DNA of 64,000 nt, taken from assembly GCF_052425735.1 (NCBI RefSeq), contig NC_135763.1, positions 33,914,001-33,978,000 on the forward strand, written 5' to 3'. This document shows positions 3,213 through 59,871 of this stretch, piece after piece. A program made the translations under genes and the position numbers. The DNA comes from Oculina patagonica (Eukaryota). The notes under the pieces are model-generated. The model ran no database searches. It saw nothing but the letters and a program-made list of their open reading frames with translations, and was not told the DNA's origin. The first letter of the stretch is position 1, and every line of letters starts with the position of its first letter.

Positions 3213-4310
3213 TTACAAATGACAACTAATATCTACAGCATTTAACGCCTTTCTAAAGGTTTTATAGCATATTGAAGTTCTGGCAGTGTCTGAGAGGCTA
3301 TTCCATAATTTGGGGGCGAAATATCGCCAAGATTTGAGTCCGTGCTTGGTAGTTTGCACTTTAGGTAGATTGAGAATATTTTGTCCTCTTAAGTTGTAGG
3401 AAGAGTTTCTAGGTTGTATCAGCTCACGCAAGCAGGGAGGGCTAGGACCGTTTATTGTTTTGAAGATTGAGCTAGCAATTTTGTATACTCGTTGCTCGGC
3501 CAAGGTTGGCAGGCCAAGGGCTTGTAGAAGGTCCCTGTAAGGGGTGTTCTTGTCCTTGAAAACAAAGCGAATGGCCCTTTCGTTAACCTTCTCTAGCTTT
3601 GTTGCAGAGGTTTTGCTGCAGAAGTGCCATGTCTCTGCGCAGTAATTAAAATGCGGAGCAATAAAAGACGTATACATTGTCTTTCTTATTTCGTACGGTA
3701 GCATTTTCTTCATACGCTTTAATACTGCAACTTGTTGAGACACTTTCCTACAGACTTTAGTGACATGCCTGTCAAACTTGAGTTTGTCGTCCACAGTTAC
3801 ACCAAGTAGATCAAAATCCTCGGCAATCGGAATAACTGCATTTTCACAGCGAAATAATGGTTTGTTCTGCGTTTTACCCATCACAATCGCTTGGTACTTG
3901 GAATGGTTTCTTTTCATACCATTGTCAGTATACCACTTGTCAACGTGGTATAGATCAGTATTGATTGTGTCTTGAACTTTGGCGGGATCTTTATCAGCGT
4001 AGAAAATTTGTGTGTCATCTGCATAAGCAGATAGTTTACTTTGCTTTACAACATAGGCTAGATCATTCATAAATATATTGAAAAGCAGAGGTCCGAGTAT
4101 GGAGCCCTGCGGAATGCCAGCTTCTATATCTTGCCATGTGGAGAAATTGCTGCCGATCCTTACCCTTTGTCGCCGATTCGAGAGGTAATCCTTAATGAGT
4201 TTAACGGTTTTATCATCAGCCCCGTACATTTTTAATTTCGATATTATCAAATCGTGAGGTACCGTATCGAATGCTTTAGATAAGTCCATAGACACAAGAC
4301 CAATCACTTG
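3213..4310 (-). CDS. LINE ORF2 C-terminal part: reverse transcriptase domain (5'-truncated, uninterrupted ~365 codons)
   Basis: Motifs DLSKAFD, GIPQGSILGPLLFNIFMND, YADD, LGVTVDDKLKF in ORF 3213..4361; the ORF-track N-terminus upstream of ~4310 is flanking DNA. Confidence 0.9.
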   Translation of the reverse strand, partial: QVIGLVSMDLSKAFDTVPHDLIISKLKMYGADDKTVKLIKDYLSNRRQRVRIGSNFSTWQDIEAGIPQGSILGPLLFNIFMNDLAYVVKQSKLSAYADDTQIFYADKDPAKVQDTINTDLYHVDKWYTDNGMKRNHSKYQAIVMGKTQNKPLFRCENAVIPIAEDFDLLGVTVDDKLKFDRHVTKVCRKVSQQVAVLKRMKKMLPYEIRKTMYTSFIAPHFNYCAETWHFCSKTSATKLEKVNERAIRFVFKDKNTPYRDLLQALGLPTLAEQRVYKIASSIFKTINGPSPPCLRELIQPRNSSYNLRGQNILNLPKVQTTKHGLKSWRYFAPKLWNSLSDTARTSICYKTFRKALNAVDISCHL

Positions 4311-4427
4311 TAATTGAAACTGTAATTGAACTTGAAACTGGAAGGTTTTTTTCAGGTTCAAGTCCCATTTTGACCACTTACTGGGGTTGTTTTATGATAG
4401 ACCTAAGTTCAATTCTTCCACAACAGT

Positions 4428-19804: not shown

Positions 19805-20347
19805 TTATGAATAATACAATGCTAACAAGGCATTTGCCGTACCAATTATATCTCCAATCGTTTCTCGCACATCTTCAACAAATTTCCCATTATACGTATT
19901 CTCCTCATCGAACACCGCTCGAATTTCCTTCCTCAGATCTTTCAGGTACTTCTGCACGTGCGCAATGCGAGGCACGCTGGCTTTGCTAAGCCGCTGTACC
20001 GTTTGATTGAGTTCGCTGTTATTGCTGTTCAAACTCGGTGTGATGTCACTGCATCCTTCTTTCACCGATCGCAAAACCGGAACACCACTGTGCCCTCGCT
20101 CTGATTCGTGTAAGATTTTAATCCATTCGTCCATCGTCGCTACCAGGAAAAGAAGATCGTCGCGCTGTTTTTTCATTGGACCCTGCATCTTCTCCAGTCT
20201 CCCCACGGTCTTTTGTAGACGCTGTTTATTGGTGCAGATCATTTTCATGGACAGGGCGTGGCTAGTTTCCAGTCCGTCTCCGGTGGTGCCGAGTTGCCTC
20301 GGGTGAAGAGAGTTGCTTGAGAACTCCACTGCAACTGTTCCGCTCAT
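19805..20347 (-). CDS. Uncharacterised alpha-helical protein, paralog 1 (180 aa)
   Basis: Single coding exon; ATG at 20347 lies ~20 nt after a polypyrimidine/TAG acceptor; aligns with 22770 and 26254 (DLxF..W..R..GVP..R..KE.C, VP..V, F.E..R...G...G). Confidence 0.85.
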   Translation of the reverse strand: MSGTVAVEFSSNSLHPRQLGTTGDGLETSHALSMKMICTNKQRLQKTVGRLEKMQGPMKKQRDDLLFLVATMDEWIKILHESERGHSGVPVLRSVKEGCSDITPSLNSNNSELNQTVQRLSKASVPRIAHVQKYLKDLRKEIRAVFDEENTYNGKFVEDVRETIGDIIGTANALLALYYS

Positions 20348-22448
20348 TTTATGTAAATTTGCACTATCTACAGGAGAGACAAAATAAGAACTTTTCAATT
20401 TTTCTGTCGTTTAGAAACGCCATATGAAGCATTAGTTGCAGTTTTGTACAAGGTAAATAAAATGGTTTATTCTGTGTTAAAATATGAGAAATAAAATATA
20501 TTTGCTTGAGTTTCTTCGATGAAGATTAATTTATTTTAAAATATAAGCGAACAAAATTATTAGAAGGGAGTTGACATCGTCGAAAACACGTATACTCCTT
20601 AAAACATTCGCGCTTGCAATAAAATTGAAATTTAAATAAATACCTTCGTCCCTTTCTTCGAGTTGTAAGCTTGGCCGATGATTTTTCCTCGGAAATTCGC
20701 CGTTTTCGACTTTTTTCTTTCAATTTTTGAGGTAGAAAGAGCTGAAAATTCAGCTATGGGCAAGTGAAATCGACCACAAAAAGAAAGGTTGATCAAGCCT
20801 TCATTTTCAGACAACCTTCCACTCCCAGAATTGTTTTGAATTGGCTTCCGTCAAAGCAACCAATAAAACTCGAGATTATTTCAAGACAAACTATGAGCAG
20901 CTGGAAAAAAAAGCCATTCAAATGCCAGACTTTGATATGCAAATGATTCGAAAAGACTTGAAAGGGGTTCATGTACTTACTGAATTAGCTGCGTAAAAGA
21001 GGATTGTGCCGGTGAAAATTAAAATCCGCGGTATTTGAAAACGAGAAGCGTATTTAAGTTCGCATTCAGTAAGCATCGGCAAAAGAGCCTTGCCTTGCGT
21101 TTAGATTAAGATAAGCAAAAATATTTGGGTTTAAAATGACTCTTTTTTGCTCGACATGTACAGGAAATAAATATTTCATTAAGGATTTTAATAACCCCTG
21201 TGAAGAAGCAATTCCAAGCAGTAAAAATAATCCAATTTAATTATAAAAGCAGTAAGATGTTGAAGGTTGCTTCGTCCTAAGGCAACGCATTATTAAAGAA
21301 AAAAATACCAAAAATCTTCAATGAAGAACCCTGCTCAGTGATTTCAGACAAAAGCCCACGCGTGCAATAATAAAGTGAAATAAGACATTTATTTCATGCA
21401 CCTGTCCGTGTGAACCAATCAAATTTACTCGCGCACTCGTATGATGGTAATTTGGCGCCAGAAACTCATAGCATTGCTTTTGGCATTTACTATTTAGCAT
21501 ACTGTCGCCCCAGGGGTTTAGCGATGTCTGGCAGCGCCCAAACTATACTAAAACATAACAAGAAACGGTGAAATCACTTTGTTTTGTTGGCCGGTTTTTG
21601 ACAGAAAGAAACCTTTTTCACCCAAAACGGTAAGTTTCTCAGTGAATATACTGCCCGAGAATATCTCCCTGGCAACTTTGAACGATAGCTTAAGTGCTTT
21701 GTACACTAGTTTAGAGCTTTTAAGCCGAGGATAGGAATTCACGGCGGTTTTTTGATACTAGCCTTGCTCTACTGATCTCTTAGCCTCCCGCACCGTGGAG
21801 AAAACCGATGTAACAAATGGAGCAAAAATTAAGTTAATCGAAGGTATTATTTATTTGGTACTTTATCGAAAAGAAAATTTCAAAGGCAACCAGTAAACCA
21901 GAATCCAAATTTTTCTTTAAAATTTCGAATCAGTCGATCGACTGTCAGTATATTATTTCACTTGACTTTGTTAATCGGATCGCGAATGTCTGAATATGCA
22001 AATTGCTAAGGTTGTTCATATCTAGAGAATTTTTAAACATTTTTTATCATTCTGAAAAATTTTAATCCTGTTTTCTTTATAATACGGAAAATGTAACGAC
22101 AGTTTTAACATTGGAACTTGCCGTTGAATTCTCCGATCATGAAATATATTTTCTTTTAACTGTATTAAATCATTTAATACAGTATGAACGAATATAGTAT
22201 ATTCGTTGTTATCTGACAAATGAAAATGGCGACTAAAAAATAAAACAACGGTAGTATATTTTTGCAACAAAAGGCGTAAAAACACGAACAATTTAAGTTT
22301 ACATTTGCTATTTATTTTTGTACAATCTTTCAGTGGAGGAAACTGATCAAAAAAAGTTGACACAATATGCGGTTTTTTGCGCATCAGGGAGGCATGAATT
22401 TTTAAACAATCGACAGGGGATGAACATTTGGAAATGATCTTTATACAC

Positions 22449-22769: not shown

Positions 22770-23273
22770 ATGGAGACACCAATTTACTTGAATGGAACAA
22801 ATTCTACAAGCGGGAAGAGCGTTTCGCTTAAACGAGTCCTTAACCACAAGCAAGACCTACAAAAGGAAATCGCTGATTTGGAAAAACTGCAGAATACCTT
22901 ACTTCAACAACGCCACGACCTCGATTTTCTGAACGAGAACATAAAAAGCTGGGCACAGAGCTTTGACAAAATTGAACGTAACAGTCAAGGAGTTCCTTTC
23001 GTGAGAAACGTAAAAGAAATTTGCGCATCGATTGAGAATCATTTGAATGACATCCATGGTGATTTTTACTTCAGAATGCAGAATCTGGTCACCGGGGATG
23101 TTCCCTGCTTTCAACAGGTTTACGAAGCTTTGGAGCTGTTGAAAAAACAAGTCTCGAAAATTATTCGAGATGACGCCACTTATAAAGCTTCGTTTATTGA
23201 AGAAATTCGACAGCTTCTTGGTCGGCTGACTGGAATTACTGACACGATGATGGAAATTTATTTTGAGCAATAA
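22770..23273 (+). CDS. Uncharacterised alpha-helical protein, paralog 2 (167 aa)
   Basis: Single coding exon; TTTTCACAG acceptor 5 nt before ATG; conserved motifs shared with the two paralogs. Confidence 0.88.
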   Translation: METPIYLNGTNSTSGKSVSLKRVLNHKQDLQKEIADLEKLQNTLLQQRHDLDFLNENIKSWAQSFDKIERNSQGVPFVRNVKEICASIENHLNDIHGDFYFRMQNLVTGDVPCFQQVYEALELLKKQVSKIIRDDATYKASFIEEIRQLLGRLTGITDTMMEIYFEQ

Positions 23274-26253: not shown

Positions 26254-26748
26254 ATGGCGGCGGTGGCAAACGACGGGGTCCGAGAGCTAACGACACGCAC
26301 CGAGAAATTATCGATTACTTCCATTAACAAGGGCACAAAGCAGTTCAAAGCTCAAATCAAAGAACTGGATAAACAGTATGAGACGATGCAACAGCAGCTG
26401 GAAGATCTACAGTTTATCCTTGAGGTCATCCTGAAATGGGACGAAGACTTCAAGAAAGTGGTCCGATTCAGCCAAGGTGTGCCCCACATGAGGAGCACAA
26501 AGGAAATCTGCGCCAACATCAAGACAGCCATGATCCCCAGCAGCGAGTTTGACCGTACAGTGCAGATTCTTGTCAGGGAAGGCGTGCCATGTTTTTCCCG
26601 GGTGACGGGGCTTTTTGAAAAGCTGAAATCCCGTCTAGATGAAAGATCTCCCAACGCGAAGTTCTCCGAGGAGATTCGTCAACTGCTCGGAGAGATAATC
26701 GGAACTTTGTGTACAATTATGAATTTCTTCTACGACCAGGAAGTGTAA
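26254..26748 (+). CDS. Uncharacterised alpha-helical protein, paralog 3 (164 aa)
   Basis: Single coding exon; TTCTTCAG acceptor 4 nt before ATG; candidate donor AG|GTAAGA at ~25168 and two AACCAATCACA boxes at ~24937 and ~24969; SQGVP/KEIC/VPCF/EEIRQLLG shared with paralog 2. Confidence 0.88.
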   Translation: MAAVANDGVRELTTRTEKLSITSINKGTKQFKAQIKELDKQYETMQQQLEDLQFILEVILKWDEDFKKVVRFSQGVPHMRSTKEICANIKTAMIPSSEFDRTVQILVREGVPCFSRVTGLFEKLKSRLDERSPNAKFSEEIRQLLGEIIGTLCTIMNFFYDQEV

Positions 26749-27110: not shown

Positions 27111-27827
27111 GGTTCCTGGTGGCTTGTCGAAGATTGTGTTCAATGGTTTGTGATTGAGTTGGGTCTATTCGCGTTCTAATTTTGTCTAGACAGGGATTTT
27201 AGTGTAATTTTTTCCCCCGACTGAGCCGCGAATGTCATTTGGCGCGTCACGCATGGTAGCCGGAAGAAAGATTGCGTGACGAGACGAATTTGGCAGCTGT
27301 TAATTAAAGTTGGTGATTATGCCCGTGATTATGCACGAAAATCAAATCGACAACTCTTGCTTTGAAATAACAAAATCTTAGATCATGTAAATTTGTAGCG
27401 GTGTCTCTGTATTCTTTATTGCTAACAAGTCAACCATTTAGCCTTTTTGCTGATTTTGTTCAATGCATGTATTGTCCGTCCAATTACAATGTGACAATTA
27501 AAAATGCTCAAGCCTGTTATTATGCACGTTTTAATCATGAATTTAAATTAAATATTAAAATAAATTTTACAGAATCCATAAAGGCAGTGATATGTCTAGG
27601 AATTAAATTAATTCTACTCAATATAATCCGATATTAAAATTAATAATGAACAGCATTTGTACACTTTCCGCCTGTCTATTGAGTTCAAATAAAAACTGTC
27701 CACAAACAACTAGGCGCTAAAATTGAAGTGCCCTCGCTAAGTGCAAACGTCCGTGACGAGAACACTAAAACAGGATTAACTCCAAAGACACTGACCACGG
27801 TGTCATTAATAACGAAGGCTCACAATT

Positions 27828-30800
27828 ATGGCGTTGAATTATCACTTGTTGTTTAAAATCGTCCTTGTTGGCGATCCTGAAGTCGGAAACGCGGCCGTAT
27901 TACATCAGTCAGCCAGCGACTGCTCATGTCCGTCGACAGTCGGCGTAAATTTCCTCAAAAGGAAATTAGAAATGGGTAAGTTTTGTGGTCTTTTGTGAAG
28001 AGCATCACTTCGAAATTTCGCCTCGACTTGTCATGACTTCATCAGTCTTTTAACAGTTGTATTCCCCTACAAGTTTTGCGTTATTGTTTCAAAGTGCAGG
28101 AAAGACTTTAACTGTTTATAGTTCTGCCCGAAGACAGGCATTTCGTTTGATGCAGATATTTTGCCTGGCGTAAGCGGAATTCATTTAAAAGCTTGTCGAA
28201 AAGCTGTCATCGTACCATCTCCGTTCACGTATTAATCCAGTGCTAGCTATCCGAGGAAATTAAAGTTCGACGTATTTGACGCCTCTAACGTTCTCAAACC
28301 AGACACCCATTTATCCTGTCAGAGTATCTGCATCTCTCTGTATAAATAAATATACGAACATTGTTATTTCGAAATAACTGTTTGAAAGTTCTTTGTAATT
28401 CCAGCGAGTATGAGAGGTTTTTAATCTGAAAGCCAATATTCTGCCTGATGGGGCGGAAGTTAATGAACAAACTTTATCGACAAGCTGTCATTTTAGCTTT
28501 GACACTTATTTTAATTTAACTACTTGTACTTTATTTTTCACTTTAAAACTTCAGATGGAAAGCGAATAAAATTGCAGATTTGGAATATTGCAGGCCAAGA
28601 AAGGTAAGAGAGATGTTTCGAATTATTTGGGCAATAAACAGCTGCCGTGATGTGGGTCACGCGATCGTTGTCACGCATTCAAGCGGTCATTTTGTTAAAA
28701 AATAGAATTCGCGCGACGAAGTTCCAGTTAGGAGAGCACAAGCTATCAATCTCCCTTTCACGAAACTTCCATGAAAAAAGAAAATTTTCAAAGCAAATGA
28801 TGCGAGATTGTGACATTACTAATTGCAGGCTTTTATCTGACGTGTTTTAGTAAACGTTTCAGCTCACCGTACCAGGAAAATACGACATTTAGCACGTTTT
28901 TGTCTCATGTCACGTCATCTCGTGTCACGTGATCCGTTTTTGTGTGGACTTTAAAGTCTACACATTGTTGTCATGCAGTTTTTTCCGATTGGGGGGTCAC
29001 TTTCCGTGATAACTCGCGTTAGTGCTTTCGGAAGTTTTCGACAGTGATCGGAGAATCCGAAGTTTCGGTGAGATGGGCAGCCAAGGCAGTAAACCCAGAA
29101 ATTCGATCAGTATCGAGTAAGTCGCACTTTATTCTTGAATCTAGAAGCCTTTTTTGACACAGCTTTCGAAGAACGTGTGGTGGCTTGAAAGTATACATCA
29201 AGGAACAACTTCAAAGGCAGCGGTGGCGTAGATGAAAAGTGAAATAACAATCACGACGGCTGAAATCTGCATATCTAATGAGCTGAACAACTGCGGTCAT
29301 AGGTCACGTTTCTTGTTTTTCACACTTTTGACTCACTTTCCACAGTTTTTGTTTCTCTGTGCGGCTTGAGCATTTTTGATTCGCATATTAAAACGAATCA
29401 AATGTCTGGTTATTTATTTATTTCAGCTTTGCCAAACACAATGAATGCACAACGAGTTGTATCAAAACAAGTTCGCTGATCATGTTGTTTTACTTGTCTT
29501 GGACTCCGGGATATAATTCACCAGCTCCATTTCTCTCAAGTAGTATATTTAACAAAAGACCGATGTCGAATTCAGGTAGAACTGAACTAAAACATTGTCA
29601 TGAAAAGAATAAAAATAACATCGAACCGTAGAATATGCATATATCCAAACCGTGCGACAAAATAATTTAATTGTCGGTTCAAATAACGTCCTTCGCCGCC
29701 TCTCAAAACACCGACTTCAACTGAATATTTCGTAAACAGAAAAATATATTTCTCCGCCTTTCTACGCAAGCTACTAAGAAATTATTTGTGAAAGCTTATT
29801 GAAAAGTTCTAATTCCAAAAAGGTTAAAAAAGAACTCATTGAAAGAAAATAAGTTTTTCGATGAGTTGTTTACACAAGCTTTACACAAAAAGTAAGGGTT
29901 GTGTAAACAAGCGATGCGAGACAGTTCACATGCTCCACGCAACATTTCTCTTTTTAATGAAAATAGTATCCTATCTTGCTAGCGGTAAGGAAAGGCTTTT
30001 GGTCTAATAACTGCTGTTCTTGTAGGATTCTAGGTTTTTATTTGCATGAAAAAAGGCATTTGTCGTGAACGACGTGACAAAGGGTCACACCACGCTCCTT
30101 CACATTGCGTGACATCTCAAGCGGCAATGGTAACGTTTGTTTCTTGAAGCGACAAGTAATAGTACACTTTGTTCTTCCAACAGTCTTGTAAATAATAAAT
30201 TGATTGACAAGTTCTTTGTTTTTTCGCCTTGTATCTCGAATTACTCGATTCGAAACTTGAAGTTGTTGACTGCTACAGAAACTCATTGATTAATTCATAA
30301 TGTCAACTTTTATTCAAATGAAAGTCCACACATGTTCGCATAGCGGACTCACTTTTACTGTTATTCATCTTTTTGATGACGTGCTGTCAGGAAGGCTACA
30401 GTAACGAACTATTCACAAAACGATGCGAAAAAATGCAAACAACATCGAATGAAAGGTCATAATTTCGTCCTCGAGTAACTTTATGTGCACGTGCTCGCAT
30501 TCAGCGGTATCTTTTTTCCCTCCGATGAACCTTTTATCAAAATCGTCTAACTCAAAGAAAATAATTTGTACACCAAAACTATGTAATTAAAAATATAGGT
30601 CACTGAGCCCTGTTAACAAAATGACGATTTATCTCCCAACCGAGAAAAAGCCGCCATTCTGTTTATGCGAGCGCGCTCACGCGTACAGGCATTCTGCGTA
30701 GTAAGGATGTGTAATGCAAAACTGAGGAATCACTTTAAATGCTCGTTCTTCCTAATGGAAGGGTAGTGAGTGGATGTAACACAACGTGAATAGTCTATCG

Positions 30801-33271
30801 AAACCAGGACCAAGCCTTGGCTTCTGGAAACCTAAACCAATGCCCTGTAATCCTGAGTCGTAATTTCTTACTTCAGCTTTACTAAAGTGTTAGAAAAATG
30901 CTACAGAATGTACAGAACCCAACTGAGGTCGAGTTGATCGTTGCGTGACGACACTCATCTCGTACCCAGATCTCTCACCAAGAGTAGGAGATCTGAGTAT
31001 GGGATTATGACAAAACAATCAACAGCTACTAACTTGACTACGGAACCATACCGTATTTAGTCAAATAAGCGCCGCCCTCGAATAAGCGCCGCATTTGGGA
31101 CAAAAAAGTTAATAAGCGCTGCCCCCAAATAAGCGCCGCAGTCCTGATGCGGCGCTTATTCGAGGAATTCCTTTTAACTAAAACAGCACTACAAAGCCTC
31201 TAAAGCAAACTTGGACATTCTTTCCATCTAAAGCGATGTTTTGCAGTTCAAAGTGTTTGTTTTAGCACTCGCCCATTAGTTTTTATATCCAACATTCTTA
31301 CAATACTTAGTTACGTAAATGTTGTTAAGGCCCCGAACTTTGCCTGGACACCTAGCGCTACTTCTTTTTTTCAGCAGGAGACGAATACTGTCAATCAAAA
31401 GACGCTATTTTCAGTTACTTTAAAGGGTTCGATTCTTTGTGGTGTCCAGATTTTAAATAAGCGCCGCCCTCGAATAAGCGCCGCACTTGAGGAGTCAAAA
31501 ATTTAGTAAGCGCCACGGCGCTTATTCGAGTAAATACGGTATGTATCCTGGCCAAAACTCATCTCCGTTTTTTTTATGTATCTCAACAACTTGAGCTGAC
31601 TGCATATGTTTTAGTTTGACTTCATATTCGGTATCCCCTGTTAATTTTCAAGAATTACACGTCTCAGGTTAAGGCGGGGGTTCACGTGAAAGCCGTTTTT
31701 CCACCGTTTAATGTGGGTTTAATGCGAATATCTCGTTAAATTAGAATTTGAATTTTTAAATTAGTAGATGGACACCAAAACAGTCCCCTGACAACCTGGA
31801 ATGCTCTTGCGTGGGGGTCGACTGTTTTGTGGTGTTTCAAAAACAATTTTCTTTCTCCGTTCTTTTCTTTAAAGGAGAAGTTCACTCCAGAATGGCCATT
31901 TATTTTCTTTACGCCAATTAAATGTTTATACAAAGATATGTTATTCACCAAAATTTCAGAATCCAACGTGTGCTATAACCCTACGAAATCTTTCCCAAAA
32001 CTCGACAACTGAACGCCGCCATCTTGAAGCTGGTAATGTATGCGTGACGTCAAAGAGCTCAGCCTGAAGTTTGGAGGAAAAATTTAAATACTCGAAACTC
32101 CTTTTTTCTTCGTAGTAGCTTTTGTCTGTTAAAATGCTTGTTTGTGCAGCTCCATTTTGCTCAAACAGAGCTCCAAGAAGTACAAAAACCAAGGAATTTC
32201 GACTATTAAAATTTTCTCGCCAAACTTCAGGCTGAGCTCTTTGACGTCACGCATACATTACCAGCTCCAAGATGGCGGCGTTCAGTTGTCGAGTTTTGGG
32301 AAAGTTTTCGTAGAGTTATAGCGAACGTTGGAGGCTGAAATTTTGGTGAATAACATATCTTTGTGTAAACTTTTTATTGGCGTAAAGATAATAAATGGCC
32401 ATTCTGGAGTGAACTTCTCCTTTAAACCTAAAAGTTTACTCAAATTCACGTGAATTCTTTCTTTCTTATGCCAACAGCGTGGCCACATACCATGCCCCCT
32501 GTCCTTTCTGCTACAGTTATTAGGGACGTTCAGATCGGTGAACGAGATAGAGTATACGACTTTAGGAATTCAGTCCAACCAGTTATATTGTTAGAGCCCT
32601 TACTCCTTGCTGTTCCTGAGCAGTTCAAAAGGAGTCTGTCGGTACGGGATTGGTGTGAAATGTGATAATCGAAAGTTTAATGCGTACATGTAGGTTTGAA
32701 AAATCATAATCGTACTCTAATGTGAAGGTCCCCAATCTCAGAGGTGGGGCTCCCACTCTGCTTTCCAACCCCCTCACCGTCTCTGCTGATTCTCTATCCC
32801 ACGAATCTATCCGAGTCGCAGAATGGTAAAATGTTGTAATGTTTTAGTTCCCAGGCCTTAACGACCAGTTACTATCACGGAGCGCAAGGGTTTATGCTTG
32901 CCTATGACGTCACCGACAGAACATCGTATGACAAGATCCCGGAATGGTTGCGCGTTATCGAAACTCACGCCAGCGAGGACTTTCAAAAGATACTGGTTGC
33001 AAACAAATGTTGGTGTAACGAAAGAAACCGCGTAATCGAAAAGAAAGAAGGCGAGAAAATCGCGCGGGAGTACGGCATGCGATACGCAGAGCTGGATGAC
33101 CTGCAAAGCTCGGAGATTGACAGGGTCCTCAAGCTGCTGATTCAAGACATCTTACACAACGCGGGCTCGCATGAAAGAGAGGAAGAAATGGAAGCTTGCA
33201 ATTTCGACGCGGGAGAAGTAGGAAACAATAATAAAGGAGTTGAAGGAGACGAAGAATTGCTTTTAGCTTGA
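27828..33271 (+). CDS. Rab8/10/13-derived protein with degenerate G-boxes (candidate pseudo-GTPase), copy A, 206 aa
   Basis: Exons 27828-27975, 28555-28603 and 32848-33271 join in frame with the same intron positions and phases as the neighbouring Rabs. MALNYHLLFKIVLVGDPEVGNAAVL..STVGVNF..KLQIWNIAGQES..YYHGAQGFMLAYDVT..ILVANKCW..YAELDDL..; no C-terminal Cys. Confidence 0.8.
31051..31539. mobile_element. Tc1/mariner-pogo type MITE (TA TSD)
   Basis: TA|CCGTATTTA...TAAATACGG|TA with AATAAGCGCC subterminal repeats. Confidence 0.85.
31873..32421. mobile_element. Long-TIR MITE with TTAA TSD (Kolobok-type)
   Basis: TTAA|AGGAGAAGTTCACTCCAGAATGGCC...GGCCATTCTGGAGTGAACTTCTCCT|TTAA; ~210-bp inverted arms. 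Confidence 0.85.
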
Positions 33272-33787
33272 TCATTCGTTCGCTACACTTGTAGCTAGCA
33301 GTGATTAAATGTAATGTAGCGTTTTTTATAAAACATTTTTAAGACTTTCAGTAGAGCTATGGATCTCGCGCGCTATCAGGTAATCCGTGAAAAAGTGTTC
33401 ATTTTTTACACCATGTTTCAGGGGCTTTGTCACGGTATTTTAGGCAATTTTATTTTGTTAAGAGCTCTAAACTTCATATTGGCAGATCAAAAGTCTTGTA
33501 TTGGCTAAATTACGGCCACATAACAAACAGGGATGATTTCCGAGCATTGTAAATGACACTTTCATACAAATTAGGATAAACTTCAAAAAAATTCGGGCCG
33601 ACGTTTTTCAAGTTTACCCGAACGCAATCCGTTTTAATCTTCGTGAATGTTGCCCATCCATGCCCCTTTTGGCCTTTCTGTGTTTGTTTTGAGTTTTTCT
33701 ACAGTTTTAAGCCGTTGTTGTGATATTTCAGTTAATTCTATGACCAGTTGGTCAGTGGTGAAATTGCCTAAAATTGCGTGACATATA

Positions 33788-36242: not shown

Positions 36243-36911
36243 ATGGAGAAACAGTTCGACTTTTTGTTCAAATTACTTCTTATCGGCGACAGCGGTGTCG
36301 GTAAGACATGTATAATATTTCGATTTGTGGAAAATAAGTTTAATCCAACTTTCATCACAACTATTGGCATAGATTTCAAAATCAGGACGGTGGAAATCGG
36401 TGAGTAGTTAGGATTTTATAATTAACGGGGACTCTGGCTTCTTGAGTAAAGGAATATTGACGACACAAGCTTGAACACTTTTCAGACAGTAACACACTCA
36501 AGCCAATATATTCGAGTCTTTTCTCTTGGCAATGCCAAAGTTATTGCAGACTCACAGTCATTTGTAAATTGTTCGTCGAAACGTTTAAAGGTTAATCATT
36601 GTGTATTTTGATCAGTGATTGTTCATATCATTGTTTACGCAATCGCTATACTGATCTATATTTGTAAATGCTTTAATAACTCAGTCCAGGGTCGAATCCA
36701 AAGAACAGGGTCACACCACTTTAGCGCGCAGTAGGAATACAAACAAGCCGAAAAGAAATCAGCAAAAATAGTCAAATGTAGACTTTAGATCATGATTATC
36801 ATATTTTGCCCCCTACGCAGAAGTTCTTTGAATTCGTCACGCAAAAAGATTGCGTGACAAGCCCAAAGAGCGTGTTGCAGCTTGCATGATTGAAGGTTAT
36901 GCACCTTTTTT

Positions 36912-36950
<39 letters not shown>

Positions 36951-37764
36951 TAACTCCCCCCCCCCCCCCCCCCCCCCCCCAGGTGATTACTTCAGCTTGT
37001 ACAATAACGAATTAATCTGTAATTTAATGCTTATAAATCATGTTTGTTATTATATAGCTAAATGTGTTCCATTGAATGAATATTTCTGTTTCATTTTCGA
37101 TAAGTTTCGAATTCTCCGGGGGAAGGGGGTAGGGGGTAGGAATAGGCAGCAAAGCCAGCTATCACCCAGTATTTTTTGCGCGCGTTGAAAGTGCGCGCTT
37201 TTCACAAGGCCTTCTCGGCATTTATATTCATTTATTCGTTCTATTTTGTGCATCAGGTGGAAAAAGAATCAAGTTACAAATCTGGGACACTGCCGGCCAG
37301 GAAAGGTAAATGAAATCCTTAATTTATATTGAAACAACAACGAAACATTTGCAATAAAGTGCGCATTTTCTTGTAGATTCCAGACCATCACGGCCACATG
37401 TTACCGTGGAGCCCAGGGTATAATGTTGGTGTATGACGTCACCGACGAAAAGTCTTTCAAGAATATTTCAAAATGGGTGCAAAAAACACAGGAGCTCGCC
37501 AACCCTAACGTTCAAAAGATGTTGGTTGCGAACAAATGCGATCTCAAAAAACAAAGACTGGTCACAAGAGAGAAAGGAGAACTGCTCGCACAAGATCTTG
37601 ACATTCGATACGCGGAAATTAGCGCTCTGTCAAATTTGAACGTAGAAGATGCATTTGCCACATTGACACAAGACGTTTTAAATAATTTTGTTTGTTCTTC
37701 CGCGGAGAGTTGGGCCACTTTAACGGTAGAGGAGACGACTAAACAGCCTTGCTGTGCACAATAG
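36243..37764 (+). CDS. Rab8/10/13-family small GTPase, copy B, 197 aa
   Basis: Exons 36243-36399, 37257-37305, 37377-37764; [35 protein letters not shown]-terminal CCAQ. Confidence 0.93.
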
Positions 37765-39079: not shown

Positions 39080-40689
39080 ACTGCAGAGCTGATAGAAGGG
39101 TCTGAATGGGTAAAATGAGAACTGAGATTTGGGCAAATTTCACTGAGAAAATGGGATTTGGGTCACTGGGACTACGAATCTCACACAAAAATAGAACTGG
39201 GACCGAGATTTGGAAAATCGGGAAACAAAAGCCCCAGTCAAAGCCTGAATAATGATTATTATTAAAAACTAGCAATGGTATATTGCTATTCGACCTGCGT
39301 TCTGATTGGTAACGCGCAATGGTATATGAGCTCTTATATCATCAAAGTAAGTACCACCAACGTTGGTTAGGTTAAAATTACAAAAACTGAAATTAAAATT
39401 TTGCTAAGAAAGGGTACGAGCGCAAATATGAATTAATCACAAGAAACCTCTGTTGCTTGAAGAAATAGCTGCCGTGAGACGTGTACCTGAAATCGAAATG
39501 ACATTGAAAATGACATAAAAAGCATAGCACTACAGACGTATCATGCAGGGACGAGGAGTTTCATCAGCGACTGAAGTCGTGAAAACAAGTGGAAATCAAA
39601 TGTATCTTTACGATGTAGTCATGCAAAAGAAGTTAATTCGTTTCGCTTGAAAACTGTCAGTTTATTTTATCCAAAGAGTGGGTTGAATAAGAATCAAAAA
39701 TTGTTTTCTCGAATCTTTGAGTGTGACATATTTTGTTACTCATGGAATATTGTTAGGCTTTTTGGCCTGGAATTTATTGCAAGCTTACACGTTGTCACCA
39801 AGAATAAAAAGTTTATTTACGTGCTGTGCCTGTATTTTTGAGGTCATTTCTGGTAACCGTCTATTGCCTTCAATACCCGAACTCGTTTATGTGTTATAAA
39901 TGTAAGTGTAAACTTTAATAGTCATCTGCCCACAGAGATTTCAATAACGATTTACAATTAAAAAACAAAACAAACAAAACTACTCAACTCTAATATAGAC
40001 AAATAAAATTGAAATTAAATGAAATAATGATTAAAAGTTTAAAAGAAGATGGTTCCTCAGGTTCGTTTTAAAAGAGTTCAGAGATTTAGCGTTTTTTTTT
40101 ATTTTAATATCATCAGTTCCATATGTTTACGGCTTACGGCTGAATGTTCTTTGGCCTGCTGGGGTCCTGAACAGCAGAATTTGCAAGCTTTGATGTTGGC
40201 GGGTTTATTTTATTTTATTTTTAAGTACTGGTTTTTAGTGGCGCACCCCCTAATTACTTACCAAAATTGGGGCGGCCCACACCTTGAGTGGATGGCCGCA
40301 GCTACAAAATTAAGCAAGCGTATAGAGTTTCTTGGAATTATCTCTAGCAGTCGCTAATCAGAGAGCAATTTGTTAGTCATGACCATAAAGAAGATAGCAC
40401 CTAGTTTGGTCCTTGTGGCACGCCTGTTTTCGAGGGTAACAAGTCCGAAAGCGTCCCTACGACTCTCACTGCTTGGTTGGACTCCGCTTATTCTAGATTA
40501 TTGCTGTTAAAAACTAAGTAAACAAACAAACAAAGGCGGGGACAGTCTAGTGCGAAATATTACCAGTCTAAATTTTGAGATCGGGAAGCAATATTTCTCA
40601 CGTGATTCCATTTGGGACAAAAAGTTCACGTGACTATGCAAACACGCTTGTAAGTAACGCAATCCGCTGTCACATGCCTGCTACAAAAC

Positions 40690-40761
40690 ATGGCGAAAAA
40701 TTACGATTACTTAGTTAGAGATAAAGATAGTGGTGTAGGGAAGACTTGTATACTGATTTAA
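40690..40761 (+). pseudogene. Rab exon-1 remnant, copy C
   Basis: [23 protein letters not shown]; preceded by the same ~65-bp upstream block as copies D (50611) and E (57541); internal deletion and premature stop. Confidence 0.85.
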
Positions 40762-50610: not shown

Positions 50611-51723
50611 ATGGCGAGCGCGAAAAACTACGATTACCTCGTCAAGATTGTGTCTGTCGGAGATTTGGGGGTGGGGAAGTCTTCTATAGAAATACGATTC
50701 GTCGAAAACAGGTTCAGTCCGCATTTGTTCTCGACAATAGGCTGCGATCTCAGGATTAGATTTCTGAAGCTCGGTAAGTAGATCATGCATGACTCATGAG
50801 GAAATATATACAGCAAGTCGGTTGTTAGTTTTGCGATGTCTCGAAATACCCAGAAAATAGTCAAGGAAAGAAATATTCTTTTAATGTTTGTTTCAATTTC
50901 TGAAGATGATTTAAATATTTTCGCCCATCCATAGATCACTGACTTCCTGTGAACACATTTGGAACTAATGTGAAATTGACATTAATTCGCAATTGTTTCG
51001 ATCAAGAAAGATTGTTTCGCCTCGAGGCTTCGTCCTGTATTTTGTCTAAGTTTTTTTATTCATATCACATACGTTTTAATGCTAGAACGATCTTTGCTTA
51101 TTGTTTCTTTCGGCTGAGAAAAATCACGCACCGTTTAGGGAAGGTGCGTTTTTTTTCCTGGCGAGGGAGGACTAGCATGGGGACATCAGTGAAAGGGAGG
51201 GGAGGGTAATAGCTCTTTATAAGCTGGCTATTATGGAGAATTCAAGGGGAGGGTCACACATCTTTCCCAGTATTTTTTAATGAGAATTTTGGTGATTCTG
51301 CTTTCCATTTTTTTAACAGATGAAGTTCTTCTTTCCCCTACTTTGATTTAATTTGTTGTATTACTATAGCTGCAAGGATACATTTCTACATGTATATAAT
51401 TATGCCATAGCACATAGTTTTCTCGGAGGACTTGTGTACTTTTCCGTCCTTATCAAGACATACAATTTCTTGTTGTTGACTATTCACTGCCTGATCTACT
51501 GAGTCGTTTAGTTCTGCGCTCCACCCTATAAAACGTAAACTACTCACTATAAAATCATAAATGTAAACAATGTTGTGAGGTTTCTACAGCATGGAACATA
51601 TATGTACAATGATGTAATGTATATGAAATTTTTCATATATGAACTGCGGATGGATATGAAAGTGATAAATGATCGTCGCAGTGAATTTCCAATTTAAGAA
51701 ATTGGATGCATCGCACCGGTATC

Positions 51724-54430: not shown

Positions 54431-55735
54431 CGATTTAAATTAAGTAAAAAGAGAAAACTTCCATATCATATCGACGTCCGTCAAAACTTCTATTTCGGTT
54501 TCCCGCTGCATGAAAACCTGTGGGACAGAGGTCCAAAATTCATAAGTTTGAAAAAAGTATTTCTCAGTATTTGCACAGGTAGCCCAGGTTCGATATATGA
54601 GTAGCTTATTTATGATGACCGTTGCATTATTCTGATTATTAAGTAATTCGAGCGATTTTCATTATTACAAGGATTTGTATGGGGAAATAAATAAAACCGA
54701 AAAAGTAACTGTTGAATTACAATATAAACTGCTCATCTGAACTCCTGTGTTGATTTGTTTGAGTTACGGCTCCAACGGTTTCTTCTCCATATATGGAGAA
54801 AAAACCGTTGGGACCGGCAAAGAAATCGCTCCAAATCCGCTTTTAAACCACACAGTTCACACAAAGAACAACATAGGAGTTCAGGTGAGTGATTTTTATT
54901 AGAATTCCAATGTTATTTTTCATAATTTTCGGCTTTATTTATTCCCCATACAAATCCTTATAAAAATGCAAATCGCTCGAATTATTATTATTACTGGCAC
55001 CAAGGGTACATTTCTAACAGTCAAGTACTATTTTAAAATTAGAGGTGATTTTGTTTTCAGTTCGAGCTGAAATCACATTCCATTTTGTCCCCTAGATTTG
55101 ATTTTATGAGAAAAGATTTCTTCCGTGGGGCCAGTGAGGCTCATGTATAAAATTGTGACAATAATAGGCTTGAAATGAAGTACAAAAACAAAACTGTCAA
55201 AACTTCTATTTGCAGAACAGCCTGCAGAACAATTTCTATTTAAAGTACTATTTTAAAATAACTGATGATTTGTTTTCAGTTCAAGCTTATATTTCATCCC
55301 ATTTTGTTCTTTAGATTCAATACCCTCCCAACAGCTTATTACCGTGGGGCCAGGGGTATCTTGGTGGTGTATGACGTCACCAACGAGAAATCCTTTCATA
55401 ACATCTCAAAGTGGATGAGAAAAATCGAGGAGCACGCGATCGAGGATGTGGAGAAAATTCTGGTTGCAAACAAATGTGACCTTGAGGAAGAGAGAGTAAT
55501 TACGAAAGAAAGAGGAGAGATGCTAGCCCAAAATCACGGCATTCGATACGTGGAGACCAGCGCACTTACAGGCGAAAATATCGAACAAGCTTTTACTCTT
55601 CTAACGCAAGACATTTTGAACAAAGTACTCTTGACGCCTGTTAAAGAGGAGAATATGAAAGATGGGAAGGACAAGAAGAAAAGAGTGAACTTGAAGGGAT
55701 CAAGCTCGCCTCATAAGTCATGCTGTTGTCATTAA
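50611..55735 (+). CDS. Divergent, chimeric Rab8/10/13-family GTPase, copy D, 210 aa
   Basis: Exons 50611-50773, 52497-52545 and 55315-55735 in frame; GDLGVGKS, TIGCDL, QIFHTQGQER, NKCD, ETSA, C-terminal SCCCH. Confidence 0.85.
51138..52270. mobile_element. PIF/Harbinger-type MITE (TTA TSD) in Rab D intron 1
   Basis: TTA|GGGAAGGTGCG...CGTACCTTCCC|TTA; absent from the homologous Rab F intron (~61540). Confidence 0.8.
51612..52085 (+). repeat. tRNA-like tandem + inverted repeat insertion with 15-bp flanking direct repeat
   Basis: Cloverleaf-like 51940-52012; ~256-bp period (51708/51964); ~51608-51706 is inverted relative to 51781-51879; CATATATGTACAATG at 51597-51611 and 52086-52100. Confidence 0.75.
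52650..52951. mobile_element. MITE with 9-bp TSD and a nested smaller IR element
   Basis: CTCTATCCTCCGCAGAGG...CCTCTGCGGAGGAGAGAG; TSD GTAAATACC; inner ATCTCGAGCCCAGAGT/ACTCTGGGCTCGAGAT. Confidence 0.7.
53230..54010 (+). pseudogene. Decayed LINE reverse-transcriptase fragment in Rab D intron 2
   Basis: GVPQGSVLGPLLF (~53335-53375), YADDTT (~53454), downstream FYFKVILPSFMYGMVVWG; multiple frameshifts. Confidence 0.8.
54338..54429. repeat. (ATCA)n microsatellite
   Basis: About 22 ATCA units. Confidence 0.95.
54644..54988. mobile_element. Fold-back MITE-like inverted repeat
   Basis: TAATTCGAGCGATTT..AAGGATTTGTATGGGGAA mirrored by TTCCCCATACAAATCCTT..AAATCGCTCGAATTA. Confidence 0.65.
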
Positions 55736-57540: not shown

Positions 57541-59871
57541 ATGGCGAGCGCGAAAAACTACGATTACTTGTTCAGGCTTCTGTTGGTCGGAGATAGCGGT
57601 GTGGGGAAGACTTGTATACTGATTCGATTTGTGGAAAATACCTTCAGTTCCTCATATATATCGACCATTGGAATAGATTTCAAAATCAGGACACTTGAAC
57701 TTGGTGAGTACAATTATACAAATCAGTTGTACGCAGATTCAAGCGGTGAAGAAATTTGCGAACATTTAGGTTTTAAGCCATTCTGAGACAGCGATTCCAG
57801 ACAGAATCTTACTCAATCATTCGTTTATTCACAAATAAGCAGTGAAGCTGTAGTTTTGGTTTGAGCGAATTTTTAAGACAAGAATTTTGAGCTTGTCGCC
57901 GGCAAGGACATTGTAGGTGATGTTACGTGAACTAATTGCATACTATAAGCCACTTGTGGGTTCTAACTGTAGAACTCAAATGACAACTAGTGTTAGTACA
58001 TTCATTTCTAAGGAATAACTTGCTTTTAAAGCGCTCGATGAAAATCATTTTGGAATTATAAAGAGACAGGGTCAGTCAGGGTTTTTAGGTATACCATATA
58101 CATAGGCATTTTAAACTGGGTATACTGTATTTTTACCTAAAATTCGGCCTTTTATGGGTATAAAGTATACTGTGTTATTTCACATTTTGGTATTTTGCAT
58201 GATTTTGAGGGGAAATTTTGGGTATACTGGGTACATGCTTTTCAGGTATACTGGTATACCACTTACCCCCCTGGCCGACCCTGAAGAGAACAAAACATTC
58301 GTTTTAATCCATCGAGACTCTTGCATACTTTAAGCGCGTTTCAGCATAATTTTGAAAGTGAAAGTGACTTTGTTGATTTCTCGCAAGGTTAGCGCTTTTC
58401 TCCCTGTTCTTAGAAGTTGCAATTTAGTTTCAGGAAAACGTTAACAGTACATACCACACGTTTTTTACAAGCAGAAGGGATTAGTGCTATGACCTTGGAA
58501 TGGGAAAATAATGTGAAACTATTCACTTCCGGTCACGGGACATTGCAAAAGGTCCGGAAATGCTGGTGACCTTAGTCATACGTTGTACAAGATTTTTGTC
58601 AATTGTTGTTTTCGTTTTTATTTAATTTCTAGATGGAAAAAAGGTCAAGCTACAAATCTGGGACACTGCTGGCCAAGAAAGGTATCAACGGAAATGTGAT
58701 CAAAGTGTTCGCGCGAAAACCGCGAATTCACACTTATTTCATTTGTGTCGTCACGCAACGCTCTTAGAAGCATTGTGTGACGGTTGAAATAACGGCTGCG
58801 TTGGAGATTAAAGAGACTGTTAAAGTAGCGCGAGTCAAACTGCTACGAAAATGACACCTTGTCAAGTCTGCTCAGCCAAGTCTGGTAGCTGGCGGGCTCT
58901 TTCGCATTTTCTCAGCGTCTTGAAATACCGGCGCTCGCCGCGATTATTTTGCCTTCTCAGTAGACAGTCTAACGTGACAGTGTAACGTAAATCCAATTCA
59001 CTGAATCGCAGCCAAAATAAGAAACGTTTGCACACTGACTCAGGGGGGGCCCCCCTTGGTTAAAATCGGGGGGATAAAGCGGAATTCTGACAGTCATTTT
59101 TATTCGAATAAATCTATTTAAAAAAATACCAAAAAATGGAATGCTAGTCCATCCATTCACCGGCGTATAAATGGATGTCCATCTATACCGGTGGAGTAGA
59201 GTATCTTGTCCAAGAAGGAATTTTCACAGTCTCTCTATTTTTAAGCGCTTAAGAACGAGCGCGAAGCACGAGGGTGTGGAGCCGGGGGAGGGAGGTGGGG
59301 GGGGGGGGAGGTGGCGAGCGACCGGTTCTCTTGAGATCCTTTTTCCCGCGTTCAACGATCAAAGAGAAGTACGAGAAAAATAGAGGGCTGTGGACAGTTT
59401 ATGACCAAGAACACCACAGTTTTGGGCCCTCTCAAGATTACTCCGCTAAATTGTTTTATTGCTTTTCCTAGATTCTATACAATAACATCCACCACTTACC
59501 GCAGAGCCATGGGCATCATGGTAGTGTATGACGTCACAGATGAGAAATCCTTCATGAACATCACAAGATGGATCAGCAAAATACGCGAAAACGCTGACAA
59601 AAACGTGAACAAAATCCTGATTGCCAACAAGTGCGACCTCGAAGAAAAACGCAAAATAACGAGAGAAAGAGGCGAAGAACTGGCTGAAAATCTTGGAATT
59701 CCTTACGTAGAAATGAGTGCTCTGGCAAGCTCAAACATCGACGAAGCATTCATTACTTTAGCAAAAGACATTTTGAGCAGGGTGTTACAGTACGGCGAAG
59801 AAAGAAGCGCAGAATTTGGGGGCGACAAACAAGGGCTTGATGCATCAACAAAGTCTTGCATGTCATGTTAG
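57541..59871 (+). CDS. Rab8/10/13-family small GTPase, copy E, 203 aa
   Basis: Exons 57541-57703, 58633-58681, 59472-59871; [35 protein letters not shown]-terminal SCMSC. Confidence 0.93.
58067..58283. mobile_element. CAGGG-terminal MITE with 6-bp TSD
   Basis: Same family as 50179-50394; TSD AAGAGA (58061-58066, 58284-58289). Confidence 0.85.

Follow-up and report, generated by a model that had tools for sequence, protein, structure and literature searches.

A stony-coral family of Rab10-derived, probably nucleotide-independent Rab-fold proteins, represented by an expressed gene of Oculina patagonica

A divergent Rab gene within a tandem Rab10-like array

The DNA analysed here, called the window throughout, is a stretch of 64,000 nucleotides (nt) of Oculina patagonica (NCBI RefSeq assembly GCF_052425735.1, contig NC_135763.1, positions 33,914,001 to 33,978,000; all coordinates below are those of the window), and it holds a tandem array of Rab10-like genes that follow a common three-exon plan. 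One gene of this locus, on the forward strand at 27828-33271, encodes a Rab protein in which the G1, G3, G4 and G5 motifs, switch I and the C-terminal prenylation site are all altered. Its exons (27828-27975, 28555-28603 and 32848-33271) join to a coding sequence of 621 nt, which we read and translated as 206 codons plus a stop with no internal stops. Exon 1 (148 nt; codons 1-49 plus 1 nt) supplies the N-terminus MALNYHLLFK, strand β1, a degenerate P-loop, a shortened switch I and strand β2, exon 2 (49 nt) supplies strand β3 and the altered G3 motif, and exon 3 (424 nt including the stop) encodes the protein from switch II onward, with G4, G5, helix α5 and a disordered acidic tail. The exons are separated by intron 1 (27976-28554, 579 nt, phase 1) and intron 2 (28604-32847, 4244 nt, phase 2), both bounded by GT..AG.

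The positions and phases of both introns are those of three paralogs in the same window (Rabs B, E and F), exon 1 ending after codon position 1 and exon 2 measuring 49 nt throughout, so that the comparison bears out an earlier, sequence-only reading of this DNA which had proposed 206 open codons, GT-AG introns at the family positions and a 49-nt second exon. The list of open reading frames (ORFs) holds the exon-3 frame alone (32894-33271), exons 1 and 2 being missing from it as that reading had remarked. The gene is present as a single copy in its own genome, with no second, intron-less copy, and an annotated Oculina patagonica 'hypothetical protein' (P0223) is letter for letter the product described here; the gene model is thus already in the public annotation, where it carries no functional comment.

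The product keeps the Rab fold and loses the motifs that serve the nucleotide

Both profile and fold place the window protein in the Ras superfamily and among the Rabs. It matches the Pfam family Ras (PF00071) over residues 10-168 with E = 4.6e-38, its nearest solved relatives are Rab10 (5szj, E = 1.7e-43) and Rab8a, and it is about 41% identical to Rab8/10. An AlphaFold2 model built from a 44-sequence alignment presents the strands and helices in Rab order (mean predicted local distance difference test score, pLDDT, 74; predicted template modelling score, pTM, 0.71), with pLDDT values below 50 confined to the shortened switch I (residues 27-38) and the tail (residues 174-206). The best Foldseek matches of the model are structures of Rab8a and Rab10, with template modelling (TM) scores of 0.79-0.86 normalised on the target.

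Every alteration that had been read from the letters is present in the window protein. The P-loop (G1, residues 15-22, 27870-27893, +) reads GDPEVGNA in place of the canonical GDSGVGKT, so that both the Lys and the Ser/Thr are gone. Switch I reads VGVNF and is preceded by a 3-residue deletion relative to Rab8/Rab10, which is accounted for by an exon 1 that is 9 nt shorter than that of Rab B. G3 (residues 59-64, 28581-28598, +) is WNIAGQ rather than WDTAGQ, G4 (residues 118-121, 33002-33013, +) is NKCW rather than NKCD, and G5 (residues 147-150, 33089-33100, +) is ELDD rather than ETSA. The G1 GxxxxGK[ST], G3 DxxG, G4 NKxD and G5 SAK motifs expected of a functional Rab are therefore not found in the protein, and in Rab8a numbering K21, T22, F33, D63, D124 and the S151-K153 loop are absent together. 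The C-terminus (DEELLLA, 33248-33268, +) has no CC, CXC or CAAX cysteine of the kind required for geranylgeranylation, the last Cys being residue 182 and the final 24 residues Cys-free. Of the Rab family motifs (RabF), KLQIW is unchanged, VGVNF, YYHGA and LAYDVT can still be recognised as variants, and RabF3 (RFxxxT) is replaced by SSQALT.

Two positions deserve separate mention. Residue 70 of the window protein (about 32858-32860), the equivalent of Rab8a Thr72 and Rab10 Thr73, is Ala in 9/9 members of the coral family described below; in vertebrates this position is the site of LRRK2 phosphorylation. G4 is NKSR in close relatives (runs X3 and X10) as against NKCW in the window. At 33008-33015 (codons 120-122) the contigs labelled as organisms B and C depart from the window by C120S and W121R, with C122F in addition in one of them; of the five non-synonymous differences listed for exon 3 between these related organism labels and the window, three fall in these codons.

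Transcripts

Contigs from three runs, which belong to three studies, bear three organism labels and were 'guessed' to be RNA, were aligned to the region. In each run (X1, X10 and X3) one contig covers exon 1 (27823-27974), is joined to 28555 and runs through exons 1, 2 and 3, with joints at 27974/28554 (skipping 579 nt) and 28601/32846 (skipping 4244 nt) that resolve to GT..AG (cut offsets +1 and +2) and coincide exactly with both predicted junctions. The X1 contig (649 nt, depth about 70) is identical to the window, over 32846-33272 of exon 3 among other parts, and the depth of this run falls to 0 within intron 1 (27992-28187) as compared with 54-80 on the exons. We read the runs as RNA because coverage is confined to exons and the contigs are spliced, there being no intron-less genomic copy from which such contigs could derive. 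Messenger RNA contigs with untranslated regions (UTRs) also exist for orthologs. The gene is real, spliced and expressed, and the spliced transcripts that the sequence-only reading had predicted are seen in all three runs. One raw-read run labelled PolyA (X23) placed none of its reads on the exons; in all probability a 3'-tag or low-depth library, it is uninformative on expression.

The contigs of X10 and X3 both begin at 27823, five bases 5' of the ATG. That of X1 carries 22 extra 5' letters without a match on 27600-27822, for which an upstream 5'-UTR exon, a leader or an assembly artefact are possible sources.

Intron 2 is packed with high-copy repeats at 28776-32695, and at 30932-32499 the summed contig depth reaches the thousands in each of the three contig runs, and loose ends are numerous. 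It is this repeat filling that enlarges the intron to 4.2 kb, compared with 1.1-1.6 kb in other corals (about 1.6 kb at locus L006 and about 1.1 kb in Pocillopora).

An orthologous family in stony corals

Homology searches recovered full-length relatives with altered motifs and open frames in at least nine coral lineages. Identity to the window protein is 74% for that of Orbicella faveolata (P0200, automatically named Rab-8B-like), 63-64% for that of Pocillopora verrucosa (P0002, Rab-13) and about 60% for that of Stylophora pistillata (P0214, Rab-13-like), and those of Montipora foliosa and M. capricornis (P0053 and P0193, Rab-13-like), of five Acropora species (the P0224 cluster, Rab-10-like) and a further complex-type sequence without an automatic name (P0225) are each 49% identical; the relative in Desmophyllum pertusum (P0359) bears the automatic name Golgi vesicle fusion to target membrane. 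Gene order is kept at three other coral genome loci (L001 in Pocillopora, and L006 and L008 in two further assemblies), where ORFs of about 165 amino acids (aa) lie upstream (two of them in L006 and L008, 82-97% identical between species), the divergent Rab follows and canonical Rabs lie downstream. Locus L008 carries a member of the Montipora protein cluster, and its synteny was traced via the cluster member P0198. Since the flanking genes match, the relatives at these loci are positional orthologs. Splice sites are conserved and the frame is open in every ortholog read, both deep coral clades being covered; the stops or frameshifts that would have spoken against a maintained gene are not found.

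In a maximum-likelihood tree the nine divergent proteins form one clade with 100/100 support on a long stem (1.26 substitutions per site). Its sister group consists of Rabs B, E and F of the window (90/92), which places the clade in the Rab10/8/13 subfamily and among Rab10 sequences, the deeper nodes being weakly supported. The gene thus originated as a tandem duplicate of the local Rab10-like array and diverged sharply on one long stem. Branching inside the clade fits the split between robust and complex corals, which published estimates date to the Palaeozoic. Desmophyllum lives in deep water and has no algal symbionts, and as it has an ortholog the gene is not tied to symbiosis.

Outside the stony corals no member of the family was found by word-indexed searches with the window and Montipora proteins or by an exhaustive profile search of 1.84 billion representatives; the remaining matches of these searches were ordinary Rab8/10 proteins, fused tandem-Rab gene models and unrelated protist proteins.

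Selection on the coding sequence

Pairwise Nei-Gojobori dN/dS among six coding sequences is 0.11-0.24, and 0.08-0.18 over the core of the G domain, with the acidic tail near neutral except for its last residues. Under a Goldman-Yang codon model omega is 0.22 (log likelihood, lnL, -2453.9), and fixing omega = 1 (lnL -2534.0) is rejected with 2ΔlnL = 160 at one degree of freedom, so that dN/dS lies well away from 1, as had been anticipated for a selected gene. For the canonical neighbour Rab B, compared in the same species pair (window versus L006), omega is 0.107 and dN is 0.042 as against 0.088 for the divergent gene; the divergent gene is less constrained than a working Rab, yet it is very far from neutral. 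Purifying selection has acted on the family over the whole history of crown stony corals.

These results bear on the reading of the locus as a decaying or recently inactivated Rab pseudogene that is still open by chance. All five functional motifs are altered, and the array does hold broken Rab pieces (the relic at 40627-40758), as such a reading would have it. However, the derived residues are common to the family and were then frozen, and the transcripts are spliced. We reject the pseudogene reading on the splice evidence, the open orthologs in both deep clades and the omega of 0.22 with omega = 1 rejected, and we give it next to no weight. The proposal that the gene is selected rather than randomly decaying is shown to be right by the same transcripts, open orthologs and dN/dS: fold kept, motifs lost, purifying selection and expression occur together, as in a pseudoenzyme under selection.

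Positions kept and positions lost across the family

Taking every position with a conservation of at least 97% among 108 Rab8/10 proteins (Rab8a numbering), we scored how many of the nine family members keep it. Kept in 9/9 are Y5, F9, G15, G42, F45, the interswitch strand residues E51, K55 and K58-W62, then Q67, E68, Y77, Y78, G83, D89, T91, I106 and A110, and in the C-terminal half C123, R129, G136, A140, E149 and I169. The F45/W62/Y77 triad is accordingly fixed in the family.

The residues that serve nucleotide and Mg in canonical Rabs have fared otherwise. In the P-loop S17 is replaced by P, A or T and kept in 1/9, G18 has become E, D or K (0/9), K21 is Lys in four of the nine and Asn or Arg in the others, and T22 has become A, S or C (0/9), so that the P-loops of the orthologs read GDPEVGKS, GDPEVGKA, GDPDVGKC, GDPDVGRC, GDREVGKA, GDTEVGKS, GNSKLRNS and, in Acropora, GNAEIRNA. 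F33 is deleted or changed in all but Montipora (1/9). T40 is kept in 5/9, with Ala in the remaining four aligned orthologs; the switch-I Thr, which the sequence-only reading had described as retained, is thus retained in the window protein and not family-wide. At G3 the Asp D63 has become Asn in eight of the nine (kept 1/9) and the Thr has become Ile in 9/9, whereas the Gly is kept in 8/9 and the Gln in 9/9. D124 of G4 is W, R, H or N, with Asp (1/9) in Acropora only. T150-K153 is kept in 0/9, being rewritten in the robust-type sequences and deleted in the complex-type ones, where a 5-residue deletion removes the G5 loop from three sequences (Montipora, the Acropora-type P0224 and P0225). The terminal Cys is kept in 0/9. 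No family member combines Walker A, DxxG and NKxD (0 members); single motifs survive in scattered fashion, as GDPEVGKS in L006, GDTEVGKS in P0225, DITG in Montipora and NQCD in Acropora. Such a pattern of survival would be expected if nucleotide dependence was lost early and the motifs then eroded independently.

The losses are not confined to the pocket. Among positions that contact nucleotide or Mg, 1/18 (G15) is kept in all nine members, compared with 26/80 of the other canonical-invariant positions, the remaining 54/80 changing in at least one member; this difference is significant by Fisher's test (p = 0.02) and not by a Mann-Whitney test on the fraction kept (p = 0.12). Within the family contact columns hold 2.67 residue types against an average of 2.34 (p = 0.14), and hence these columns fell from invariance to ordinary variability and are not hypervariable. 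The earlier description of change as 'focused on the binding residues' is not borne out by this comparison, as divergence is broad. We also considered change confined to the nucleotide-contact residues as an account of the family, and it is weakly supported; the whole protein, not the pocket alone, diverged on the stem.

Divergence was accompanied by the fixation of new residues on the switch face. D6H, I14V, I47K, T64I, R69S, T72A and I84F are invariant in the family, and K46L (8/9) and D44N (7/9) are nearly so, which argues for a re-specified binding surface and not mere relaxation. The tails likewise carry shared residues, [DE]xxxL[LI][GA] at the very end of every robust-clade tail read and an ELLSDF-type ending in Montipora and Acropora. 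The acidic di-leucine consensus [DE]xxxL[LI] is matched by every robust-clade tail read and by Montipora and fails in Acropora and P0225, and for this reason we treat the LL tail as a conserved motif and not as a proven sorting signal.

The pattern of kept and rewritten surfaces can be set against a natural dominant-negative function, in which the protein would be a nucleotide-free Rab mimic that traps a guanine nucleotide exchange factor (GEF) or an effector of the neighbouring Rab10-like paralogs (the 'GEF sponge' or decoy of the sequence-only reading). Mutations of the P-loop Ser/Thr and of G4 are the classic route to GEF-trapping Rab mutants. The F45/W62/Y77 triad and the interswitch strands are kept, and the model superposes slightly best on Rab8 of the nucleotide-free Rab8:Rabin8 complex (4lhx, TM 0.86, root mean square deviation 2.6 Å), with a margin over other Rab8 structures that is too small to interpret. 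However, switch I is shortened, and switch II and nearby positions are rewritten (R69S, F70S/T, T72A, D44N, K46L, I47K) on the very surfaces that GEFs and many effectors read, while the new residues are themselves conserved, pointing to a new partner and not to mimicry of the parent. Because the regions read by GEFs were rewritten and then frozen we rank the sponge lower and regard it as quite unlikely; a pure GEF sponge is less likely than a new partner.

The neighbouring genes

Canonical Rabs lie downstream of the divergent gene. Rab B (36243-36399, 37257-37305 and 37377-37764) ends in CCAQ, Rab E occupies 57541-57703, 58633-58681 and 59472-59871, and Rab F is represented by 60739-60898 and 63682-63730, its last exon lying just past the window end. 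The relic at 40627-40758 is an exon 1 of Rab E/D type with an in-frame stop and deletions through the P-loop, a dead fragment in the array. Rab D is an odd copy in which exon 1 (50611-50773) is rewritten (GDLGVGKS, IGCDL, LKL) and the last exon (about 55301-55735) is canonical and ends in SCCCH. Neither tblastn nor a pattern search found an exon 2 (KLQIW) between these two exons, and Rab D may be incomplete or spliced otherwise.

Just upstream of the Rab array lie three paralogs of a family of single-exon ORFs of about 165-197 aa, at 19805-20398 (-), 22770-23273 (+) and 26254-26748 (+). They share 29-36% mutual identity, other coral genome loci hold an ortholog of each one with 81-97% identity, and the family, which has no Pfam family on record, evolves with an omega of about 0.03 in the orthologs tested. 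Farther upstream an ORF of 382 aa (3213-4361, -) is reverse-transcriptase-like and probably a fragment of a non-LTR retrotransposon.

Discussion

We consider it probable that the locus is the Oculina-type member of a stony-coral family of Rab10-derived, non-prenylated pseudo-GTPases that act by nucleotide-independent binding. Most likely the protein cannot hold or cycle guanine nucleotide, which would make it a class i pseudo-GTPase. Physiological Mg-GTP binding is predicted to be lost because the P-loop Lys and Thr, the stacking Phe, the G3 Asp, the G4 Asp and the G5 SAK are lost together, and established Ras and Rab mutagenesis lies behind this prediction. A cytosolic location is likewise predicted since there is no Cys for geranylgeranylation.

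On the stem branch the gene underwent the 3-residue deletion that removes the guanine-stacking Phe, the substitutions T64I, R69S and T72A in switch II, the rewriting of G5 and the loss of the prenylated Cys tail. From then on the residues that serve Mg-GTP (P-loop Lys and Ser/Thr, switch-I Thr, G3 Asp, G4 Asp and G5 SAK) have been unprotected and have drifted independently by lineage. What was retained would most likely be a constitutive, nucleotide-independent binding module composed of the old effector and regulator face (interswitch and switch II) together with the C-terminal LL tail. Two sets of fixed residues suggest this module. One comprises the fold core, the interswitch strands (E51, K55, K58-W62), Q67-E68, Phe45/Trp62/Tyr77 and Y78, and the other the new invariant residues of the switch face (H6, V14, K47, I64, S69, A72, F84) and the LL motif.

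Several points weigh against this interpretation. Singly, most such substitutions only weaken binding in Ras, as mutagenesis has established. G66, Q67 and E68 and the P-loop residues G15/V19/G20 are largely conserved, and a nucleotide-blind protein would not obviously need them; this is the main observation in favour of an atypical nucleotide role. GxxxxGK[ST] persists in L006 and P0225, DxxG in Montipora and NQxD in Acropora, and some lineages may have a weak or atypical ligand site. The enrichment of losses at contact residues is modest, at p = 0.02 with a rank test that is not significant. Finally, the restriction to stony corals rests on relatives not having been found elsewhere, which is absence of evidence and not evidence of absence.

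Some of these points belong equally to a second account, in which the family would be atypical nucleotide-dependent small G proteins (class ii/iii pseudo-GTPases or switches of altered specificity) whose binding of nucleotide is weak or constitutive, perhaps Mg-free or involving a non-guanine base, and which signal from a locked conformation. The conserved G66, Q67, E68 and P-loop glycines and the intact Walker A of L006 and P0225 are consistent with such a switch, and Entamoeba 'pseudoRabs' with non-canonical G motifs have been discussed as possibly active (PMC8514894). However, no ortholog keeps more than one of Walker A, DxxG and NKxD, the G5 motif has been either rewritten or deleted and Montipora alone has Phe33, while the window protein lacks K21, T22, F33, D63, D124 and S151-K153 at once. 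In addition the species differ freely at the Lys and Ser positions of the P-loop, as would not be expected of residues that still bound phosphate. We therefore regard an atypical switch as unlikely, though worth serious consideration.

Within the favoured interpretation of a nucleotide-independent binding protein a more specific role can be sketched, to which we would attach little probability. The protein may have been a nucleotide-free cytosolic Rab10 derivative since before the two-clade split, with its lipid anchor swapped for an acidic di-leucine-type signal, and may serve the Rab10/8 exocytic route as a constitutive adaptor or competitor. If true, it could be a coral-specific regulator of polarised secretion, and a Rab turned from switch to fixed adaptor beside its functional siblings.

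The interest of the family extends beyond this sketch. Having been detected in stony corals alone, it is a candidate for a trafficking component specific to corals, and it places a dead copy beside live paralogs with a history that can be traced through a stem burst, long purifying selection and independent erosion of P-loop, G3 and G4 by lineage, a clean natural experiment on the use of a Rab fold that has lost its nucleotide switch. In practical terms the database labels Rab-8B-, Rab-10- and Rab-13-like or 'Golgi vesicle fusion' in at least 10 coral species need correcting, as they would mislead pathway and expression analyses. In the literature library searched, we found no publication citing any of eleven accessions of these proteins or linking pseudo-GTPases with cnidarian Rabs.

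Comparison with known systems

Rab10, Rab8 and Rab13 (5szj for Rab10, 4lhw for Rab8a) share the fold of the coral protein and are its best matches in sequence and structure. KLQIW, YY, DVTD and the F/W/Y triad are retained, and the exon plan and intron phases are those of the canonical neighbours. In contrast to these Rabs the coral family has degenerate G1, G3, G4 and G5 motifs, a deleted guanine-stacking Phe and no C-terminal Cys, its RabF3 (RFxxxT) reads SSQA and the position of Thr72/73 is Ala in all members.

Among Rab-fold proteins that lack a prenyl anchor, RABL2, IFT27/RABL4 and IFT22/RABL5 are soluble subunits of complexes; they keep functional nucleotide-binding motifs and are conserved across ciliated eukaryotes, whereas the coral family has lost its nucleotide motifs and is found only in stony corals.

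Pseudo-GTPases were recognised as a class recently, and their well-founded examples are few, most of them ancient and without a close active relative. CENP-M is one example, and the p190RhoGAP domains are further established ones. The class i members AAGAB and CENP-M resemble the coral family in that the G-fold is kept and G-motif residues are lost, and they act by protein-protein binding. Class i, of which the N-terminal domain of AAGAB is an example, is defined by the absence of both guanine-nucleotide binding and hydrolysis (PMC12490416). While AAGAB and CENP-M are ancient and widespread and have no close canonical paralog, the coral protein is lineage-restricted and a recognisable Rab10 derivative that sits beside canonical siblings, and its nucleotide-free state is predicted from its sequence. 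A second parallel is offered by Entamoeba, whose Rab-family proteins EhRabX10 and EhRabX3 have several non-canonical G motifs and are proposed pseudo-GTPases, although the paper on EhRabX10 discusses EhRabX3 as an active hydrolase (PMC8514894); these pseudoRabs belong to an unrelated lineage and are of independent origin, with no orthology to the coral family. Pseudo-GTPases, proposed pseudoRabs and non-prenylated Rab-like proteins are thus already known, and what is new here is a lineage-restricted, Rab10-derived family in corals.

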